A stretch of DNA of 63,897 bases, the filler included, from Ministeria vibrans ATCC 50519 (lineage: Eukaryota; Protista; Filasterea): NCBI GenBank assembly GCA_943704425.1. It is 11 parts of 11 records of this genome, joined end to end, with 100 filler letters (N's around TTAATTAATTAA, not from the genome) between each part and the next. Parts side by side here need not be neighbours in the genome. Positions count along the whole stretch, not along the records: positions 30,197 to 50,412 come from CALSCP010002381.1; 10 more parts are not named here. One strand, given 5' to 3'. Under the pieces are notes generated by a model. That model was not told where the DNA came from and ran no database searches. It saw nothing but the letters and a program-made list of their open reading frames with translations. Of the stretch, positions 30,197-50,412 are shown one piece after another. Position numbers and translations under genes: made by a program. Each line of letters begins with the position of its first letter. The first letter of the stretch is position 1.

Positions 30197-30300
<104 letters not shown>

Positions 30301-30354
30301 TTAATAATATTAATAATAATATTAAAATCATTATTATTACTTTTTGCATCACAG

Positions 30355-30675
30355 TATGGGACTTGGATCGTAATGTGTGTGTGGGCACACTGGTGGGCCA
30401 TCGTGACGGACTGACAGCCGTGTCCTTCAATGACCGGTGGATTGTGACCGCATCGATGGACCATACCATGCGCGTGTATGACGCAACGACGGGCGATATG
30501 GCACGCGTGCTGGGCGGCCATCGCAAGGAGGTGCAGTCGGTGGTGCTTTGTGATGCGCTTGTGGTCTCAGGCAGCTGGGACAACACGATGCGTCTGTGGA
30601 ATGTCAACACTGGGGAGTGTTTGCATGTGCTTGCTGGCCACACCGGTAAGTGTGTGTGTGTATGAACATGCAATG

Positions 30676-30711
<36 letters not shown>

Positions 30712-31201
30712 GGTAGGGTCTGTGTATTGTGTGTGTGTGGACACAGAGCGACAGCGGATTATTAGTGGGAGTGGCGATCGAACGATTCGGATATGGTCGT
30801 TAGGGACGGGTGAGTGTCTGCGGGTGATTGAGCAGGCACATCGGGATACCATTGCGTGTATGGCACTGGTGCAGGGCAGCGAGCGACCCGCCATGCTTGT
30901 GACGGGCAGCTTTGACAACAGTCTGGCGCTGTGGAACCTGGCGACGGGCGCACGAGTGCATGCGCTGGTTGGACACGCTGGAGAAGTGTGGTGTGTGCAG
31001 GTGTCGAGTAGTCACACGCATGTGCTGTCGGGCTCTATGGACGCCACCATGCGCATGTGGGATGTTCAGACGGGCCTGTGCGTGCAGAGCTTTTATGTGG
31101 GGGCCGCGGTCGTTGCCATGCATGTGGACCATGCCAAGGCGATTCTTGGTTGCGACGATGCGAGTCTCTCCATTTATGACTTTTCCATCGTCATTGACTA
31201 A
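30355..31201 (+). CDS. WD40-repeat protein (FBXW7/beta-TrCP-like propeller), 3' part
   Basis: Repeated GH...SGSxDxTxRxW motifs, at least 6 blades; 5' part in gap. Confidence 0.85.
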
Positions 31202-31576: not shown

Positions 31577-34500
31577 ATGGAAGACACCAACGCCACCGCG
31601 TGGCTTTGCGAGGCGTTCGGTGCAAGTCGCGAACGCGTCGCGTCTCTCTTGAAACAATACTCTAACGACGCTGCACGCGTCACGGAAATGTAAGCGTCAG
31701 TGGCTGTGTGTATCGGGATGGCGATGGTGCTCCTGCTTGTTTGTGTGTAACCGTTTCATGTCTCAATATTAATTTTTGTTTTTTTTTTTAAAAAACAAAA
31801 AATCATTGTTTCCTTCATTCCAGTCTGTTGGCGACTCCCAAGGCTATGGTTCAACCGCAACCTTCTCGGAGCATTCTCTTGCCGCCCAACGATGTGGCAA
31901 GTGCCACGACGACTGCGAAGAAACGACCGTTGGCGCCACCAAGCGACGTTGTTGTGCTGAACGGAAATGGCGCGCTTTTGCGAACACTTGGCTCGGTCGT
32001 CGTGCAAGCGTACTCTACGCGCAGTGGCAAGGGCATTCTTCGACCAGAGGAGGAAGTGGTTCTTGAGTGCACAGTTATGCAGGAGAAAGGGAAGAAACGT
32101 GGTCGGTTTGGCTCAGGCTCGTCGCAATCTCAGGGTTCCGCCCCCCCACCGGCCATTGTACGCTTTTACCGCGCACGTGACCACCTCGAGGTTGGCCGTG
32201 TGCCCAACGATGTTACACGCTGGCTCTCCGTCTTGCTGGCGGACGGTCTTATTGCTGTGCGTGGCACTGTTGTCGATGCTCCTCAGGTTATGCAGACCAT
32301 GACCAACGTGCTTCTCAACCTCACCGTCTCACTCACGGCCACTGCATTTACTCCGCTCGCTCACTCTCGCACCACAGGCGTTTCGGCACCTGCCGCCATT
32401 GCCTCGTCGTCTTCGCTTTCCGTCTCGCCCACAAGTCAGGATGCTGATGCTCGCGATGCCATGCTCCAACTGCGTCGCGACGCCTTTGCCTCACTCTTTG
32501 GTCTCTGTTGTGTGCCCCAACGTCGTGGCACTAGCACTCAACAACCCCAAGATAATCACGACCAACATGCGTTTGCTGAGACACCAACCGCCACAGCTGA
32601 TCTGTTTCATCTGGAAAACTTGTATGGCGACGCCACCGACGACGACGACGCCCTCTTGCCCGAACGCACTCCTCGCGACGGAGCCATGATGGCCAAACTC
32701 ACCCCTTACCAAAAACAGGCTCTCTACTGGATGACCCATCGCGAAGAGCACGACAACGGCACCGCAACTATCACTGCCGAGGGGCATTCCAAAAGTGACA
32801 CCATTCACCCGCTTTGGGTCGAATATTCCGTTCAAGGTGGCACTTCCATGTTCTACTTTAGTCCCTTCAGCGGCGAGGTCACGCTGGAGTTTCCATCGGC
32901 AACACAGACAACGTGCGGTGGCATTTTGGCGGACGAAATGGGATTGGGCAAGACAGGTAGGAGGGAATTTTTTTAAAAGAAAACCAGGGATTAATTTAAT
33001 TGACTTGCGTTCGTTTTGTAGTTGAAATGCTCTCGCTTGTGATGGAGAATGCGGGGGAGGGAAGCAAGAACGAGAGTCGTGCGACACTTGTAGTGGCTCC
33101 GTTGACCCTTGTTTCGCAATGGCAAGACGAGGCGTTGCTCCACACCACTCTTGGTGACGATCGTGTCCTTCTGTACTACGGCCCGGAGCGATCAGCTGTG
33201 ACCCAGCGCGCACTCACAACGCAGTACGACATTGTTATCACCACCTATGGTACAGTCTCGTCTGAGTATGAGTCGCTCTCTTCCGATGCTTCCGGCTCTT
33301 CGACGTCCCTCTTTTCCGTTCCTTTTCGACGTCTCATTTTAGGTATATTTGCGAATGCACAATGAATAATTGCATAAGACATAATCGTTTTTTGTTATTC
33401 TTTCATTATTGTTAGACGAAGCACACACCATCAAGAACCCCCAGTCGACCGTGTCTAAGGCGTGCACTGCGCTACGTGCACGTCGTCGCTGGTGCGTGAC
33501 GGGTACACCAGTACAAAACCAACTGGGCGATCTCTTTTCGCTCTTTCGCTTTCTCCATGCGCAGCCTTGGTCGTCACGACCCTTTTGGCGTGCCAACATC
33601 GAGGTGCCCTTTGAGCGCAAGGAAGCACGCGCGCTCGATGTACTTCGATCGGTTCTGCAGCCCATGATGCTGAGGCGCACCAAAAACACTCGGGATCGTC
33701 ATGGCGCGCCAATCCTGCAACTGCCGCCCGTCGATGAGCAGATTATTGAAGTTCATTTGTCGGCTCCTGAGCGAGACTTTTACGACGCACTCTTTAAGGG
33801 TAGTCGCACACGTTTTAGCGATTTTGTTCGTCGTGGTACCGCACTCTCTAACTACGCCACGGTCCTTGAGTTGCTCCTTCGACTTCGTCAAGTACGTTTT
33901 TGTTTCCGTTGTTGTGCATCATTGTTTTCATTGTGTGTTTCCTTTTTTTTTTTTTGGCTTTTTTTTCTTTCAATGGTCTAGGCGTGTGACCATCCCTTTT
34001 TATTATCATCTGCATCACGCGACACGGCTGGCGTTGACCTTGAGGCCTTGATGAATCGGTTTTTGTCCGCTGAGAATGGCCAGTCGACAGAATTTGTTGA
34101 GTCGGTGCGTCGACAAATCTCAAGTTTCGAGGACGAGGCGCCGGTGAGTGCAGAAGCAAGCGTTGCTGTGAATGTGGATGATGAGGATTTGATGGTGGTG
34201 GGAAGAGACAGTGCTCAGACTGCCGGTTGTAGTAGCAGTGGTAATGGTGGTGATGATGCCACGGAGGACGCGGAGTGTCCGATCTGTTTGGACCGGCCCG
34301 AGAAGGCCGTTATTCTCCCGTGTTTGCACATTGGCTGTGGTGAGTGTCTCGTGCCTATTATCACGCGACTCGGTGCTTGTCCCGTGTGCCAGCGTGCGCT
34401 TACCGTCGACGACCTGGTGGACGTGGAGACTGTGCGATCGGCCGAGGTGCGCAAGCAGCAGCAGAAACAAGGCGGGAGTGTGGATGACGAGAGTGGCTGG

Positions 34501-35782
34501 CGACCCTCGACCAAACTGACGCTGCTCACGGAGGATCTTGTTCGCGTGCGCGACGACGATAACCAGGTTGCTGATGGAAGACGCACCACCAAGTCGGTGG
34601 TGTTCTCGCAGTTTACCAGCATGTTGAATCTGTGCGAGGTGGCACTGCGTCGTGAGAATATTGCTTTTGTACGCATTGACGGGTCGCACACGCAGGCGGT
34701 GCGCCGACGTGTAATTGAGACCTTTTCGCGTGACCCTACCGTACGGGTCTTTCTTCTGTCTCTCCGAGTTGGCGGCGTGGGTCTCAACCTTACTTCGGCT
34801 ACTCGGGTAAGATTAAAATAGTATAATACGTCTTATTAACGTTATGCTTTTCCATACTACATTTAGGTTTACCTTTTGGATCTGTGGTGGAACCCAGCCG
34901 TTGAGCTTCAGGCCATCAACCGAGTGCATCGTATTGGGCAGCAGCATCCCGTTGTTGTGCGACGCTTTGTAGTGGTCGACTCCATTGAAGTAAGAGATAG
35001 AGAGCGAGAGGGGAGAGGGAGAGAGAAACAAAGTGATGGACACAAACAGATAGGCAGAGAGAGGGAGAAAGAAACAAAGTGATAGAGAGAAGGGAGAAAG
35101 AAACAAAGTGATAAAGAGAAGGGAGAAAGAAACAAAGTGATAAAGAGAGAGGGAGAAAGAAACAAAGTGATAAAGAGAAGGGAGAAAGAAACAAAGTGAT
35201 AGAGAGAAGGGAGAAAGAAACAAAGTGATAAAGAGAGAGGGAGAAAGAAACAAAGTGATAGAGAGAAGGGAGAAAGAAACAAAGTGATAAAGAGAAGGGA
35301 GAAAGAAACAAAGTGATAGAGAGAAGGGAGAAAGAAACAAAGTGATAGAGAGAAGGGAGAAAGAAACAAAGTGATAAAGAGAAGGGAGAAAGAAACAAAG
35401 TGATAGAGAGAAGGGAGAAAGAAACAAAGTGATAAAGAGAAGGGAGAAAGAAACAAAGTGATAAAGAGAGAGGGAGAAAGAAACAAGATGATAGAGAGAG
35501 AAGGGAGAAAGAACCAAAGTGATAGAGAGAGAGGGAGAAAGAACCAAAGTGATAGAAAGAGAGAACAGAACCACCATGGTCTTATTAGTATTCTTGGTGA
35601 AGTGAGAGTGGTCGTCAAGAGATAATACTCATCATCTCATCGGGTGATTTTTGCAGGAGCGGCTATTGCGATTGCAGAAGAAGAAAGAGGCTCTTGCACG
35701 TCACGCGCTGACCAAGTCGACAGAGGGTGCCGATGAGAAGGGTCAGCGGTTGGAGGACCTCAGAATGTTGTTTGAATTGTAG
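31577..35782 (+). CDS. RAD5: RAD5/HLTF DNA repair helicase-E3 ligase (HIRAN, SNF2, RING, helicase C)
   Basis: HIRAN IVRF..EVGRVP; YQKQALYWM; [13 protein letters not shown]; LDEAHTIKN; TGTPVQN; CPICLD..PCLHIGC..CPVC; VVFSQFT; [21 protein letters not shown]. Confidence 0.93.
34990..35560. repeat. Intronic minisatellite, ~29-31 bp unit GGGAGAAAGAAACAAAGTGATA(A/G)AGAGAA
   Basis: Roughly 17 tandem units visible in the last RAD5 intron; the same core recurs in many other introns. Confidence 0.9.
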
Positions 35783-36034: not shown

Positions 36035-37783
36035 TCACTCTTCCGCTTGCGTTGTTTGAGTGAGTCCTTCAGCAACCGCAAAGCGCCAAAGGAAGCTCTG
36101 TGAGTTCTCTGGCATGTTTGTCGCAGCAAGAGCCTCGCGAGTCAGTCCTGAGCAAACCCCAATACAAAGACAGAATTGAGTTGTGTGTGTTATGAATAAT
36201 TGATAAGAAAACATATATTTGTGCAACCTACCTGATTCTCCGCCAAGTGCTTTGATTTTGCCACAAATTTGGTCAATTTTGGCAGTGAGAAGAGTGACAA
36301 AGGCCGAATTGCTTGAATCGTCCGCACTGGCCGCTAAAAACAACAACACCGTCAGGGGAGCATGAGAGAAAAAGAGAAAGAAATAATTGTACCTTCCATC
36401 AGAGTCTTTGCAAGTTCCTTTTGTACCTAAAAGCACACCAAAACAAACAAAAACAGACATGTTAGACTCCGTAACACACACACGCACCATAAATACACCT
36501 ACACATACACAATACAGAGAGAGACAGAGAGAAACAGAGGGGAGAAAGAAAAAAAAGTGATAGGAGAGAGAAACAAAGTGATATATAGAGAGAGAAATAA
36601 AGTAATAGAAACGAAATGAGAGAGAGAGAAACGAAGTGATAGAAACGATACGACAGAGAGAGAGAGACAAATGAAGTGATAAAAGGAGAAACGGAGTGAT
36701 AGAGAACAAAAAAACACACAAAGATAGAGATATTCAAATACCTTTCCCATGGCAAAGGTGGCCGTGGCGTGATCTGCGACCATGATGCTCCCGTCGACCA
36801 TGTTGGCCACAATGTCGTACAGGTCGTCGCGATCCTCGGCCCGCCCATCGACAAACCCCGCCACAACGTGTGTTTCGTCGCTAAGGTCTGCACACTCGGC
36901 TTCGTTAAGGTCGTGCAGTGCGTGGACCATGCTTGATGAGTTTGCGCGGTGGAACGCGAACAATGCAATCGCACTGCAAACACACACACACACACACACG
37001 CAATACACAATCGTTTAAGTACGCCATAAAAACCAGTCGTTTTGCGGGGAGTGGGAGTCGTGTTGGACTGTGTGTTATTACCTGGTAAACGCTAGCACCT
37101 TTTCCGTGTCGGGGCCAATGACAAAAATGCGTTGTTTAAGGAGCATGGCGGTCATGATGATGATGGATTCGACGCCAAACAGGTCAACCACAGCCTTGAG
37201 CGATCCTGACGTCGCCAGTCTCTTCGCTGCCGAGCTGTCCCCGTCGTATTCCGCTGCAAGGAACTTCTTGCCCCCTCCGCTGCATTTTCCCTTGACGAGC
37301 GCACCCAAAAAGGCTGGAAAGCAACGGAGCGAGCGTCACATTACAAAGGCAAGGCTGTTCGTTGTCGATTGTGTCGTACCTTTGAGAACTAACGTCGCAT
37401 CGCCTGTTGCAGCAAACTGGGCCGATAATAACGAGCAGAGATCCTTCCATTTGGCAGGGTAGAACGACCTGGTCAGGAGCACCACTGTGAAAGAGGTGAC
37501 CTGAGAAAGAGAGAAAAATTGAAAATAAAAAAATTCAATGAAGCTGGTCGTCTCTTTGGGGCTTGTGGAGGGATTCTCCGGGCGTACTTGGGGCAGACAG
37601 TCGGTCTCCTGGACGATGCGGTGGCACAGGTTGAAGTGGGTTCCGTCGAACTGGCCGCAGCGGAACGGGACAGTCTCTGCGGGAGCGGTTTTGCCCAGAA
37701 GGCCTATGATGTTGACGGGAGGAAAGTGGCGATTTAGAGCGGAAAAGACAATTCAGGGGACGACTGCGTCGTGGCAGACACCG

Positions 37784-37874
<91 letters not shown>

Positions 37875-38313: not shown

Positions 38314-44202
<5,889 letters not shown>

Positions 44203-44437: not shown

Positions 44438-44590
44438 CTAAGCGCGGAATCGGGCGAGCACGCGACGGTCCTCGTCCGTAATGCAATAGTACGTCTCCAG
44501 GTCGTCGTCTTCGTCGTCGTCGGACGAGCTCATGCTGGTGTGGTCCATGCGCTCCGCCTCGTTCTTAACATCATAGCCATCACTGTCGGT

Positions 44591-44622
<32 letters not shown>

Positions 44623-45718
44623 TGCTGTCGTCGTCGTCGTCGCTGTTGTCGTCGTCGTCGTCGCTGCTGTCGCTGCTGTCGCTGCTGTCGCTGTTGTCGC
44701 TGTTGTTGTTCTGTCTGTAGGGGCAAGAGGCCGCAGTCGCAGCCAAGCGTTTGCCGCCCATTTTAGCGGGTTTGGGAACGGAGTCTGCGTTGAAGTTGAA
44801 TCTGTCGGTCATCTTCATGGGTTTGCCGCCAGCCATCGACGATCCCATGGTGACCGTAAACTCACCCGTTCGCTTCCTTTTCTTCTGCTTCTGCTCCTCG
44901 TCGGCCCGAGACATATTGGGGTTGGTTTGGGACGACTTCCACGCAATGCACAGGCTGCTCTCCTGATCGGACGTGTATGAGATCGACACGGACCCTGAAT
45001 TGCTGTGACCTTTTGCGGTAGAAGCAGCAGCAGCTCGGGTGGCTTTAATTTTGATCTCGCGTGGACCATCTCCGCCCGCAAGAGTTGAGCCGCGAGATGC
45101 AGATACCAACAGGTTGGTGCTAAACACGTCAGCAAGCGCTTTGAGCAACAAATTGACGATGCAGCGAGCTTTGTGGCCGACTGAGCCGACATGGTTCAGC
45201 TCAGCGGGGACGTACTCATCAATGAACGCCTTCGGGTCCGCAAAGACTTCAGCTGCCGCCCGCTTCATGTTGGTCTTATTCTTAGGCTTCATTTTGACCG
45301 TTTTCTCAAGTGACGTGACGTCGCGCATGTCGACCGTCGGCGACAGCGCCTCCTCCAAATTTCCTGACGGGGAAATCGTCGGTAGAATTTCCTCCGTCTT
45401 TCTCTGATAGTCAAGCAAGAATGCGATCGGAGCGACCCCCTTCTTGTTCATCACACCAATACAAGTGGCAAACGCGCGGAAGGCCACGCGACGGTCATGG
45501 GCGGAGTAGTTACTGTTGTTGATGGAGGAAAGATGGACAAGCGGAAGATGGACAGGCGGAGACGGATTGGCTTGCGTCTGGGCGGTGTTGAGGGCAGTGC
45601 GAACTGCATCAATGAGTACCTACAGTTACGGGAGAGAGAAAGAGAGAGAGAGAGACCGCGCGTGGTCAGGTCGTAGGGAATAGATCAATCAATTAGTTAG
45701 TACGTCGGGCGATGACAT
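44438..45718 (-). CDS. Unknown-family protein A (novel domain, basic patch, Asp/Ser-rich tail)
   Basis: Micro-exon MSSPD (45718-45704), phase-0 GT-AG intron, exon 45619-44438; alignable by eye to the two neighbouring ORFs. Confidence 0.75.
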
Positions 45719-46361
45719 TGCAATGATTCTCGATGGAAACGGGTCAACTCACGCAAGTGACAAGTGGTATTGGCTCTAGTGAGTCTAGTCAGTACTCGTC
45801 TACTCGATAGGGTAGACGGGCGTACGCACTAAAGAGAGAGAGAAAAAACTGATTATTTGGGAAATTTTCCAATAAATTTTTTTTATTCTCATTTTCTTGC
45901 ATTTGTGTAAATTTGCAAAGATCGAAAAAACCGCAACAGCACAAAATATATCAGCGCTACTCAAGTTTTGGCCAGACCTGGTGTAACCACTGTGTCACAT
46001 GATGCATTCCCTGCATTCCCTGAAGTCGCCAGTCCTCCTGAAGAAGAGATTGCTGATAATACTTTTCATTTTTTCGACAATAAACATTGAGTCGACAAAC
46101 TCAGACGCTGAACTCCAGAACCGCACGATCAGTCGGGCCATGGAGTGGTTGGGGTCTTGGCTGGGGACTGGGAGCAGAATGGAGGCGCTGCAGTGGCAGT
46201 TGAGTGAAGACTGATTTTCTTGCATTTTTCGGCAAGAGTTAATCGTCCCATTGAGATGATCGCACAGAATTGAATTCGCACTAAAATACAATTTTAATTG
46301 CTTCTCCTTCTTCCCCCGTTCCAAACCGGCTACTTCGTCGTTGTCCCCACACCTACTCCCC

Positions 46362-48691
46362 ATGTCTGGACCACCGTCACCGTCCTCTAGGGTAAAAATA
46401 TATTCGTCCAGTTTTTCTTTTTTTGTCTCATTCTCAACTCAACTGAACGCCTCGTTCGGCACCTCTGCCTCATGGCTAACTCATTGGCTGTGTTACTGTG
46501 TACTGTTTAGAAAGCCAGCGATAGCGGTAGCTCGCCAGTGACCGACTTGGATTTGGACGAAATATTTCTCTATTTTCCGCCGAGCGATTTGAACCTCAAC
46601 TTCTCGAGCGCGCAGCGGCAGGTCGCCTTTCACGCGTTCATGGGCGTGTGCAATACCCTCGCGACATCTCTTTCAAAATTTTTGGCGCGCCCTGAGCCGG
46701 AGAGACGCATAGAGATTGACAGATTTGCTCCGCGCGACAATCTCGGCAACGGCTACACAACCCACAGCGACATTGCACACGATATTGTCTTCCGCCTCTT
46801 CAATCACCTCGGCCGTGTCTTTCACGAACAACGGTTTACTCATGCGACGCGCATTACGACTCGATTTTGTGCCCGCGGCTCCACCGCAAAGACTCCGCAT
46901 GTACGATTTAGCGCGGCCCGTCGCGACGCACAAAACGTCATACACGAGGGACAATTGGTGTATTCTGTTGACATCAATCACGAGTTCAAGCTGCAATGGG
47001 AGGGCTCAAAGCCGCCGAAAGACAATGCGAAGAAAGAGAAGAGAACGGCGCCGGCGGATGAGACGGAGACGGAGAAGGGGACGGGGACTGAGCGCCGGGC
47101 CCGATCCAAGGCGAGGAAAGACGTGAAAAAGACAAAGACGACAGCTGCGTCAACGTCGAGCGCTATGGCGGGCAACGACATGTCCAGCCGTGCATTTGGT
47201 TTGTCTTTTGACAGCGCTGCGTTCGAAGTGCCGAGCTATGTCGACGAGATGGAGGTGCGCTGCACGACGGAGACGGTTGCCTATACTGCCGTACAGACTC
47301 TGGCGGGGCCGTCAATGGATGAGAGCGACGACAACGACAACGACGTCTCTTCAGTCACCGCCGCTGCTGCTGTGGGAACAAGCAACCCAGGCTACCAGAA
47401 TGATGATAACGACGACGGCCACAGGCTTATTCCGCAAGGCAAATTCCCACCCTCAATGGGCGCACGCTGCACTGTCGCCTCTGCCGCTGCGTTCTCAATG
47501 CCAGCGTCTGTTGAGGACAACGGTGATGATGACGATGACAACGACAATGAATTGGTTGCCATGGGCGCACGCTGCACTGTCGCCTCTGCCGCTGCGTTCT
47601 CAATGCAAGGGTTCGTTGATGATGATGATGATGATGATGACAACGATGACGACGAGTTTATCCCGCAAGGCCAATTGCCTCTCGCAATGGGCGCACCCCG
47701 CACTATCGCGTCTGCCGCTGCGTTTTCAATGCAAGGTTTTGCTGTTGATGATGATGATGATGACGACGACGACGACGACTGGGACGAAAAGCTGGTTGCA
47801 ATGAGTGCAGACGAGGTGGCTGCGAGTGTTTTGTTGGCCATGGACACGCTGGCGCTTGACGACGACAATGATGATGACGACGACGATGACGACGATGACG
47901 ACGACGACGACGACGACGACGACAGGCTTATTCCGCAAGGCAAATTACCACCCTCAATGGGCGCACGCTGCACTGTCGCCTCTGCCGCTGCGTTCTCAAT
48001 GCCAGTGCCTGTTGAGGACGACGGTGATGATGACGATGACGACGACGATGAATTTGTTGCCATGGGCGCACGCTGCACTGTCGCCTCTGCCGCTGCGTTC
48101 TCAATGCAAGGGTTCGTTGATGATGATGATGATGACAACGACGACGACGACGAGTTTATCCCGCAAGGCCAATTGCCTCCCGCAAAGGGCGCACGCCGCA
48201 CTATCGCGTCTGCCGCTGCGTTTTCAATGCAAGAGTTTGTTGTTGATGATGATGATGATGATGATGATGATGACGACGACGACAGGGACGAAAACGACGA
48301 CGACGACAGGGACGAAAAGCTGGTTGCAATGAGTGCAGACGAGGTGGCTGCGAGTGTTTTGTTGGCCATGGACACGCTGGCGCTTGACGACGACAATGAT
48401 GATGACGACGACGATGACGATAACGACGACGATGACGACGACGACGACGACGAGTCACCGGTAGAGCCATCTACCCCGAGCCGTGTGACGCACACAGAGA
48501 CAACTGCCATCGTCCCAGCGAGTAGATCAACCGCCGACGGCCACAACGACGTCGACGAATCGGGTGAGGAGGACGATGGCGACACCACAGAGACGGATGC
48601 GTCGGAAAATGCCGATGAAAAGGAGGCGTACGAGGCCATCTCAGAGGAAGACGCTCTCCTCATTTCAAAGTATTACGCCAAAGTTCCCTGA
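46362..48691 (+). CDS. Unknown-family protein B (novel domain, basic patch, duplicated poly-Asp repeats)
   Basis: Micro-exon MSGPPSPSSR (46362-46391), phase-0 intron to 46510, then a >720-codon open exon. Confidence 0.8.
47421..48450 (+). repeat. Internal ~500-bp tandem duplication in protein B
   Basis: ACAGGCTTATTCCGCAAGGC at 47421 and 47922; MGARCTVASAAAFSM-type subrepeat x6 separated by GAT/GAC runs. Confidence 0.9.
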
Positions 48692-49552
48692 AGCAAGTAA
48701 AAAATTCATCTCTCCCAAAAATGACAAAGACTAAGAAAACATGTAAATTTTGTATATCCTTCATCAAGAGGGTGCTTCACGCATTCTGTTTTGTACTAAA
48801 CTAGTAAAAGAGTTAGTATCGCTGGCGGAGTGGCTGTCACCGACCTCTCGTTTGTGGTCATTTTCTAAGTAAACAAACCACACTTTTTATCACTCTCTCG
48901 AAAATCTTACTTGTCGGCTGGTCAGACCTACGACGGCCACCAGTTCATCAATCACCATTGAGGAAGTACATGTCTTTAGTAATGATATTGATTATCATTA
49001 TGAGAGTCTTGCTTTGAATAACATCAGTCCCCTTCGCTATTATGCATAAAAATGGAGCGGAGAAAGTTTGGAGAATCCCCTAACATGCAGACCTCTCTCC
49101 TTTCACTTACAGCTTCGAGGCCTTACCTCAATGCAAAAATATTACTTATTAGTACTCTAAATTTCTTTCAAATCAATCTTTGCATATGGATGCAGCCAGG
49201 GGGTATAAATAGTCGTCAAAGACATCAAAAGGCAATTAATTTTCAATTTCAGAACTAGAACTTTTTCCAACATCATTTTTATACCCTTTTTGAGACTTGA
49301 GAGTCGAGGTCAGTCTGTAGGACTTATAAGCAACCAAAATCCATTTATCTTGTGCTTACAATTAGAGAGCTAGGTCGGGTCGCATTCAAATTACCCACTT
49401 TACATTTTTGGACGAAGTAAATTTAATGTGTTTTCGTCCACATGCGATAGCTGCACGTGCACTCAAGCCTTTTTCGTCCTCAAAGTCTAGTCTTTTTATT
49501 CGCTTTGTTCATCAACTATCAAACAAGCAAAATCGCTTATGTTTATAGCATC

Positions 49553-50258
49553 ATGAGTCAAACAGTAAGGCATTATTATTACACTCAATATGATTTTTTT
49601 CTTTTTTTTCTCCACACACCGCCAAGAATTTCATGCAATTGGTGTGTTACCGTTGTACCTTCTCTTGCCAACCCTTTTCCGTCAAACATAGACTGATGTC
49701 AGCGATGTGATACCGACCAGCCAGAATCTCGGGTGGATGCTGAAGCACGAGAACAACATCCAGCATTTCAACGCACAACAGCGAAAACGCGGATTTCTGA
49801 TCTTTATGAATTTATGCAATACTATCAGCATGTCTATTGTCAAATTCCAGGCTCTCACCGACGATCAGAAGCACCAATACATTGACGAGTACGCACCGAG
49901 AAACACAATTCAAGGCGTGACGACCGACAGCGACATCATTCACGAGTTGGTATACTGTTTGTTCAACGTGTTGGGTGCGGTGTTTGCCAGCGGTTTGTAC
50001 ACCAGCGGCACGAGAATATCAACACGATTCAGTACATGCGGCAGTGGCGGCACCAACGTTGCAGCAACCCCTCCACTCATCAAAATAAGCGCGACACGCA
50101 AGACGCCTCGGCACCACGGCCACTTTGTAATGACGCTCGAGACGGAGGGTCACTTTAGCTTTTTCTGGTGTCCTGCGCGCACGAAAGACCACAATGGCGA
50201 CGAAAGGCCATCAAAGCGACTCAAAAGAGTACGCAAAAGAAAAAGAATGAAGAATTGA
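49553..50258 (+). CDS. Unknown-family protein C (novel domain only, C-terminal NLS-like patch)
   Basis: Micro-exon MSQT (49553-49564), phase-0 intron GTAAGG..ATAG to 49691, single large exon; clear similarity to the protein B N-domain. Confidence 0.78.

Positions 50259-50316: not shown

Positions 50317-50412
<96 letters not shown>

Follow-up and report, generated by a model that had tools for sequence, protein, structure and literature searches.

Three neighbouring genes of Ministeria vibrans encode paralogous proteins with an unmatched domain, a basic patch and, in two of the three, an acidic tail

The window analysed in this work is a stretch of 63,897 nucleotides (nt), filler included, from the filasterean protist Ministeria vibrans ATCC 50519 (NCBI GenBank assembly GCA_943704425.1), in which 11 parts of the genome are joined end to end. 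One of these parts, the piece of eukaryotic nuclear DNA at positions 30197-50412 (from CALSCP010002381.1), carries a cluster of three genes in its right-hand 6 kilobases, which we call A, B and C. Their open reading frames (ORFs) lie at 44438-45787 on the minus strand (A) and at 46400-48691 (B) and 49560-50258 (C) on the plus strand, with A and B in divergent orientation. A first-pass annotation of this DNA had noted that the three ORFs align block by block, and all of the peptide blocks that it quoted are indeed present in the translations, in the order that it gave. Here we describe the domain that the three proteins share, the charged segments that follow it and the searches that were made for relatives, and we weigh what such a family may do.

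The three proteins are related to one another. In BLASTP comparisons B and C are 38% identical across 138 residues (expectation value, E, of 2e-29), A matches C in its central and C-terminal part (E 3e-5), and A matches B over the N-terminal helix (E 1e-3). A matches its paralogs in two co-linear pieces and is more distant from them than B and C are from each other. When A is compared with a profile of B and C, hhalign reports a probability of 86.5% (E 4.6e-6, 93 columns), and the Smith-Waterman local scores of A with B and of A with C have z values of 5.8-7.4, the observed score being reached in none of 2000 shuffles. The pairwise similarity of A to the other two, on which the idea of a family had been made to depend, is significant by BLASTP, by hhalign and by shuffling. 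Overall, the domains are ~25-40% identical among the three proteins.

The genes also evolve as coding sequences do. Identity between B and C at the first, second and third codon positions is 0.55, 0.65 and 0.34, with the third position near saturation, a pattern that indicates selection on the protein. The GC content at third codon positions (GC3) is 0.61-0.70 for the three genes (0.70 in A exon 2), compared with 0.50-0.62 in the RAD5-like, thrombospondin type-1 (TSP1) and WD40 genes. As read from the DNA, A, B and C are paralogous protein-coding genes in a eukaryotic chromosome.

The start of each gene requires some explanation. In A and B the first in-frame ATG lies downstream of the start of the conserved N-terminal block, so a short upstream exon is needed. 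All three ORFs are bounded on the 5′ side by a TAG preceded by a pyrimidine-rich stretch, and 84-127 nt further upstream there is an ATG followed by an in-frame GTA donor. Each gene therefore appears to open with a micro-exon of 4-10 codons that begins Met-Ser and is separated by a phase-0 GT..AG intron (84-127 nt) from a single large exon. These models would account for the missing ATG codons, and under them the bounding TAG of each ORF would be an intron acceptor. A compatible exon-1 model is found in ~16% of shuffled upstream sequences per gene and in all three together in ~0.4%, a figure that leaves aside that all three bounding stops are TAG. At the other end of the cluster, the piece stops 154 nt past the stop codon of C, in an (AC)n run, and an in-frame AGA/GTACGC lies 27 nt before that stop. 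Since the piece ends so soon, gene C may have an additional 3′ exon. The earlier description of C as domain-only is therefore right for the ORF, while the gene itself may be longer.

The shared domain has ~135 residues and ends at an invariant Trp. In A an insert of 60 residues, which is found in neither B nor C, separates the first helix from the FIDEYVP block. We considered this insert as a possible intron and rejected the idea: no GTA donor, no acceptor and no pyrimidine tract can be seen in it, its composition resembles that of coding DNA, and it is taken as coding for lack of these splice signals. The insert was misplaced when the whole of A was aligned to B and C with MAFFT, and we used instead an alignment of four rows, in which the two conserved pieces of A are separate rows beside B and C. 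The domains are basic, with isoelectric points (pI) of 8.9-10.2 (9.3 in A).

AlphaFold2 was run on this four-row alignment. The model of the B domain has a predicted local distance difference test (pLDDT) score of 66.7 and a predicted template-modelling score (pTM) of 0.63, and that of the C domain has a pLDDT of 72.6 and a pTM of 0.70 (67-73 across the five models). The two models agree on a predicted alpha+beta fold of four helices, the last one long, followed by a four-stranded antiparallel sheet. Strand 1 is predicted at TRITTRF/TRISTRF, the last strand ends at the invariant Trp, and the Gly/Ser-rich loop that joins strand 1 to strand 2 is modelled with low confidence. This is in keeping with the helices, the strands and the terminal Trp of the first-pass annotation, with four strands predicted in place of its three.

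Beyond the domain the proteins are strongly charged, and the layout that had been proposed earlier, of a domain followed by a basic patch and then, in A and B, by an acidic tail, is also the one in our translations. A patch of Lys and Arg (K/R) residues lies 10-50 residues past the conserved Trp in A, B and C. By eye, sequences that fit the K-K/R-X-K/R core of a classical nuclear localisation signal (NLS) can be seen in each protein: A has KKRKR, B has KKEKR and RKDVKK, and C has KRLKR and RKRKR. The C protein ends 29 residues beyond the Trp. The pI of the whole protein is 4.8 for A, 4.05 for B and 9.8 for C. Neither a signal peptide nor a long hydrophobic segment was found in the translations of A, B and C.

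The tail of B comprises 563 residues with a net charge of -135. Much of it is a tandem duplication, whose units are ~501-528 nt apart and 91-93% identical in DNA, with nested sub-repeats of 105-126 nt; each unit has three MGARCTVASAAAFSM-type sub-repeats, poly-Asp runs and one KLVAMSADEVAASVLLAMDTLAL segment. Judged by this identity the duplication is recent, and the length of the tail is probably polymorphic. Four motifs in which a run of acidic residues is followed by an aromatic one ([DE]3+ then F/W) occur in the B tail, namely DDDEF, DDDDEF, DDDDDDDDEF and D11-W, while the same pattern finds none in the A tail. The segments that follow the domain in A and B are marginally similar overall (z 2.7), while the last 22-30 residues are clearly so (z 6.3). 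This C-terminal motif, which follows the acidic tracts and had not been reported in the first pass, has a Smith-Waterman score of 42 against 17.8 +/- 3.9 for shuffles (reached in 0 of 2000) and the consensus E-x-Y-x-x-I-[ST]-[DE]-E-D-x-x-[VL]-[LI]-[AS]-[RK]-[FY]. The positions of all of these features are listed in Table 1.

Table 1. Features of the A, B and C genes and proteins, in positions of the window. Exon 1 and the intron of each gene are putative.
Feature	Position	Strand	Basis or remark
Gene A putative exon 1, MSSPD	45704..45718	-	ATG, then in-frame GTACTAAC donor
Gene A putative phase-0 intron, 84 nt, GTACTAAC...CTGTAG	45620..45703	-	CT-rich tract ahead of acceptor
Gene A exon 2, 393 codons + stop	44438..45619	-	open frame
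A shared domain, NYSAHD...LCIAW, 191 residues including the 60-residue insert at 45239-45418	44939..45511	-	alignment; hhalign E 4.6e-6
A basic patch, QKKRKR	44870..44887	-	translation
A Ser/Asp, then poly-Asp tract	44513..44710	-	translation
A C-terminal motif, DDLETYYCITDEDRRVLARFRA (ETYYCITDEDRRVLARF)	44441..44506	-	common to A and B
Spacer from the start codon of A to that of B (divergent genes)	45719..46361	.	643 nt
Gene B putative exon 1, MSGPPSPSSR	46362..46391	+	sequence
Gene B putative phase-0 intron, 119 nt, GTAAAAAT...CTGTTTAG	46392..46510	+	sequence
Gene B exon 2, 726 codons + stop	46511..48691	+	open frame
B shared domain, NFSSAQ...FKLQW, 134 residues, pI 10.15	46598..46999	+	alignment, model
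B basic region, KKEKR...RRARSKARKDVKKTK	47030..47137	+	translation
B acidic tail, tandem duplication with poly-Asp runs	47389..48453	+	repeat comparison
B C-terminal motif, EAYEAISEEDALLISKYYAKVP (EAYEAISEEDALLISKYY)	48623..48688	+	common to A and B
Gene C putative exon 1, MSQT	49553..49564	+	sequence; alternative: internal ATG at 49737, intronless
Gene C putative phase-0 intron, 127 nt, GTAAGGCA...AAACATAG, T-rich	49565..49691	+	sequence
Gene C exon 2, 188 codons + stop	49692..50258	+	open frame
C shared domain, HFNAQQ...FSFFW, 135 residues, pI 8.9	49764..50168	+	alignment, model
C basic C-terminus, KRLKRVRKRKRMKN (KRLKRVRKRKR)	50214..50255	+	translation

The domain had been called unrecognised, and it stayed so in every library that we searched: Pfam, PHROGs, PDB by sequence and by fold, the BFVD collection and 1.84 billion representative proteins gave no significant match to a characterised domain. 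Using hmmscan with the whole proteins (to E 1) and with the domains alone (to E 10), no Pfam match common to A, B and C was found. C alone matched cytochrome c1 (PF02167), with a score of 19.4 bits where 22.8 are required; we take this as chance, as the match is below threshold, is absent from A and B and comes without a CXXCH motif. PHROGs gave no match to the domain proteins, and an exhaustive HMMER search of the 1.84 billion representative proteins with the domain profile gave none at E <=1e-3. A word-indexed search with C returned an empty result that lacked even C itself, and the ORFs of B and C are not on record in public gene calls. The sequence-profile search of PDB found nothing beyond 2gf4 at E 0.087. 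No relatives were found in JGI metagenome contigs (scanned with the B and C alignment), in IMG/VR or in prokaryotic genomes, and a tblastn search of the piece at 30197-50412 found no additional copies of the domain.

How far these negative results extend depends on how well the host lineage has been sampled. The RAD5-like exon at 34048-34818, a part of a neighbouring gene, was used as a probe. An identical protein is encoded on a 1218-nt scaffold in ENA (ERZ23497376, SCHR19-1_SAMN09406036_METAG-scaffold_13866), whose positions 1-1218 correspond to ~33957-35170 of the window with near-identical DNA and few differing positions. This near-identity indicates that the same species is present, thinly, in one public metagenome; a paper mentioning the sample SAMN09406036 was not found in the literature. 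The next best matches of this exon are only 36-41% identical, and those of the HIRAN-containing ORF reach at most 31%, in searches confined to proteins whose length is similar to that of the query. Subject to this, the protein collection holds no close relative of the source organism, nor are the A, B and C ORFs on record there. The host lineage being barely sampled, the absence of relatives is weak evidence for a domain restricted to it. At the sensitivity of HMMER the domain appears to be absent from sampled life; its distribution inside its own lineage is not addressed by these searches. The term lineage-specific in the first-pass annotation agrees with the lack of relatives anywhere searched, subject to this caveat.

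The predicted fold stays unclassified. Foldseek comparisons of the B and C models with PDB gave no match at E <=1e-3, and the best match in BFVD (E 0.0098, root-mean-square deviation 19 Å) is not significant either. For the moderate-confidence B model the best matches are NTF2-like or SnoaL proteins and the self-association domain of LDB1/LDB2, at E 0.02-0.2 and template-modelling (TM) scores of 0.2-0.3. For the C model, also of moderate confidence, they are COMMD proteins and again NTF2-like ones, all at E >0.1. NTF2-like proteins are the commonest class among the weak matches in both fold searches (3hx8, 3er7, SacM/AkaM, LinA, the C-terminal domain of Tim44, ARC6), and the best of them has E 0.022, a probability of 0.75 and TM 0.24-0.30 with the moderate-confidence B model. 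The likeness is one of helices followed by an antiparallel sheet in ~130 residues. However, our models have four predicted strands, where NTF2-like domains usually have five or six in a strongly curved sheet into which three helices pack, and there is no sequence signal. That NTF2-like modules recur should be taken as a lead only.

The LDB proteins (LDB1/LDB2, Chip, SEUSS, Adn1) are one point of comparison, being nuclear adaptors in which N-terminal helices and an antiparallel sheet are directly followed by an NLS. Four of their structures, 6ptl, 6s9s, 9bpo and 9ozv, are among the Foldseek matches of the B model, at non-significant values (E 0.075-0.23, TM ~0.2, deviation 12-14 Å); with this moderate-confidence query 6ptl has E 0.075, TM 0.23 and a deviation of 12.8 Å, and 6s9s has E 0.08. 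LIM_bind (PF01803) was not matched by hmmscan, with proteins searched to E 1 and domains to E 10. Unlike the LDB proteins, A, B and C have no LIM-interaction domain, and the tails here are poly-Asp. Our literature searches found nothing on LDB1 together with NTF2-like domains and nothing on the exact phrase ‘DEF Y motif’. COMMD proteins, the top Foldseek matches of the C model, share with it a size of ~190 residues and a helical N-terminal part followed by a beta meander, but the scores are poor (E 0.12-0.3, TM 0.16-0.24, deviation >18 Å) and COMM is not matched in Pfam. A terminal helix, with which the COMM domain ends, is absent from the DSSP strings of both the B and the C model.

The reading that we tentatively favour, mainly because of the charge layout of a basic domain and patch followed by an extremely acidic tail, is that of a lineage-restricted family of nuclear DNA- or chromatin-binding proteins, whose acidic tails may serve as activation or histone-binding modules. 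The K/R patch, which is of the classical type, would direct the nuclear import of all three proteins, and the basic domain, together with the basic stretch that extends it, would attach to DNA, RNA or chromatin. A nuclear role had been proposed in the first pass, and the composition of the proteins agrees with it. The poly-Asp tails of A and B, with their embedded hydrophobic and aromatic motifs and the C-terminal motif, might then recruit the transcription machinery. Alternatively, the tails could bind histones, as the acidic segments of other proteins discussed below do, or other basic partners, or they could fold back on the basic domain and regulate it by auto-inhibition. C consists of the domain and basic patch only and, lacking a tail, could take up the sites or partners of A and B while giving none of the output of the tail, as a competitor or a partner. 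A basic DNA-binding domain with an acidic tail is the plan of HMGB-type proteins and of classical acidic activators, to which A and B may be compared, with the tail-less C resembling a natural competitor. However, A, B and C have neither an HMG box nor any other DNA-binding domain known to Pfam, and DNA binding is putative here. The modular plan of basic domain, NLS-like patch and acidic tail is of a known kind, and the domain in it is unmatched.

Several points weigh against this reading. The gene models are read from DNA alone and the fold comes from predictions, which have only moderate confidence and were made from a four-row alignment. The NLS call was made by eye, not by a predictor. The four acid-run-plus-aromatic motifs of the B tail compare with 1.57 expected, an excess without significance, since 126 of 2000 shuffles contain at least as many, and their copies are not independent, given the recent duplication of the tail. 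The whole tails of A and B show no significant similarity in BLASTP. In the absence of a significant structural neighbour the fold gives no functional transfer, and a basic domain suits the binding of a partner's acidic tail equally well.

The closest rival to a DNA- or chromatin-binding family is a chaperone of histones or other basic proteins, in which an N-terminal domain would oligomerise, as an NTF2-like cone or a COMMD-like handshake, and poly-Asp tails with aromatic anchors would shield the client. Most of the weak fold neighbours (NTF2-like/SnoaL proteins, the LDB1/LDB2 self-association domain, COMMD rings) are alpha+beta modules that dimerise, although all of these matches are non-significant, with E >=0.02 and TM <=0.3. 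A folded domain followed by an NLS and a long acidic disordered tail is a layout shared with nucleoplasmin (PMC5738438), NAP1/SET, ANP32E, Spt16 and the acidic domain of APLF. Binding of H2A-H2B by acidic stretches that carry an aromatic anchor is well established for Anp32E, Spt16, YL1, Nap1 and APLF (PMC6101569), with the H2B alpha1-alpha2 patch as the site bound by such cap-anchor motifs. The four motifs of the B tail resemble these cap-anchor motifs, but their excess is not significant. Furthermore, the folded domain of A, B and C is unrelated to those of acid-tailed chaperones, has no match in Pfam (NAP, nucleoplasmin, ANP32 leucine-rich repeats and COMM included) or PDB, and is basic, which is unusual for a core that works beside histones, and C lacks an acidic tail altogether. 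We consider a chaperone rather unlikely on balance.

A second alternative is that these are fast-evolving orphans with a role outside the nucleus, for example a cytosolic or secreted poly-Asp protein that binds cations such as Ca2+ or is associated with mineral, in which the K/R patches would be incidental. Tracts of poly-Asp and of Ser/Asp are characteristic of proteins that bind calcium or form part of a mineral matrix. The tail of B evolves fast, as its recent duplication indicates, and homologs were found nowhere in the searched collections. Yet the putative N-termini have neither a signal peptide nor a membrane segment, C has no acidic tract, and the K/R patch has kept its position in all three paralogs despite the low identity of their domains. 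A non-nuclear role is improbable in our view.

An origin in a transposon or an integrated virus, which had also been proposed in the first pass, is one that our results speak against, and we think it highly improbable. Clustered, lineage-restricted genes without homologs on a contig rich in micro- and minisatellites might suggest such an origin. However, the flanks of the genes have neither terminal inverted repeats nor long direct ones, the only repeats being GAC and GA low-complexity runs; transposase, integrase, reverse transcriptase and capsid domains were not found; and searches of IMG/VR, PHROGs and BFVD gave no relatives. The GC3 of the three genes is at or slightly above that of the flanking host genes, and their three putative introns are short GT..AG introns like the ~66-nt intron of the RAD5-like gene. 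That the ORFs arose by chance or are decaying pseudogenes is likewise highly improbable: A and B do lack an ATG ahead of the conserved block unless the predicted splicing holds, but the frames run to 188-726 codons, first and second codon positions are conserved while third positions are near saturation, the predicted folds of B and C agree, and A, B and C resemble one another in their putative micro-exons and introns.

Should the domain prove to be a new fold that binds nucleic acids or chromatin, the lineage-specific nuclear regulators would gain a family from a eukaryotic group with hardly any entries in sequence databases. In its full form, the proposal of a nuclear regulatory family would be that a new fold and family serves as the DNA- or chromatin-binding module of such regulators, with acid-tailed activators or chaperones (A and B) and a tail-less competitor (C) encoded at one locus, and we regard this combination as doubtful. 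The locus would also be a compact natural test case, with the acidic tail present in two of its proteins and missing from the third. The spacer between A and B is a possible region for a divergent promoter serving both; the spacer and the region upstream of C have no common motifs of 10 nt or longer. That said, orphan and lineage-restricted families are frequent in protist and under-sampled genomes, and the present value of our results is mainly as a pointer for annotation when genomes of relatives become available.

The remainder of the piece holds further genes and many repeats. It opens with a (TAA)43 array (30197-30325), and the 3′ part of a gene encoding the C-terminal part of a WD40-repeat protein follows at 30650-31198 on the plus strand, with a T32 run before it. 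The RAD5/HLTF-like gene, with HIRAN, SNF2, RING and Helicase_C domains, has several exons at 31828-34818 and beyond, also on the plus strand: HIRAN and the start of SNF2 are encoded at 31828-32973, SNF2 at 33409-33978, and RING and Helicase_C in the exon used above as a probe. A GTAAG..TTTAG intron of ~66 nt and another exon come next, and the intron after that is occupied by a minisatellite with a 29-nt unit (AGAGAGAAGGGAGAAAGAAACAAAGTGAT). This minisatellite is dispersed over intronic or intergenic sites at 35056-35560, 36541-36710 and 43433-43579, and in reverse at 38922-39078, the largest array having 17 copies. Immediately downstream of gene A, and like it on the minus strand, lies a very large gene with thrombospondin type-1 (TSP1_spondin) repeats, seen as three consecutive ORFs at 40226-43338 with at least 13 repeats (7, 4 and 2). 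No transfer RNA genes and no Rfam families were matched in the piece. Its microsatellites include many (GA)n and (AC)n runs, among them (GA)44 at 37786-37874, an imperfect (AG) array of ~220 units at 39591-40033 and, at the right edge, (AC)47 at 50318-50412, which is probably the reason why the contig ends there.

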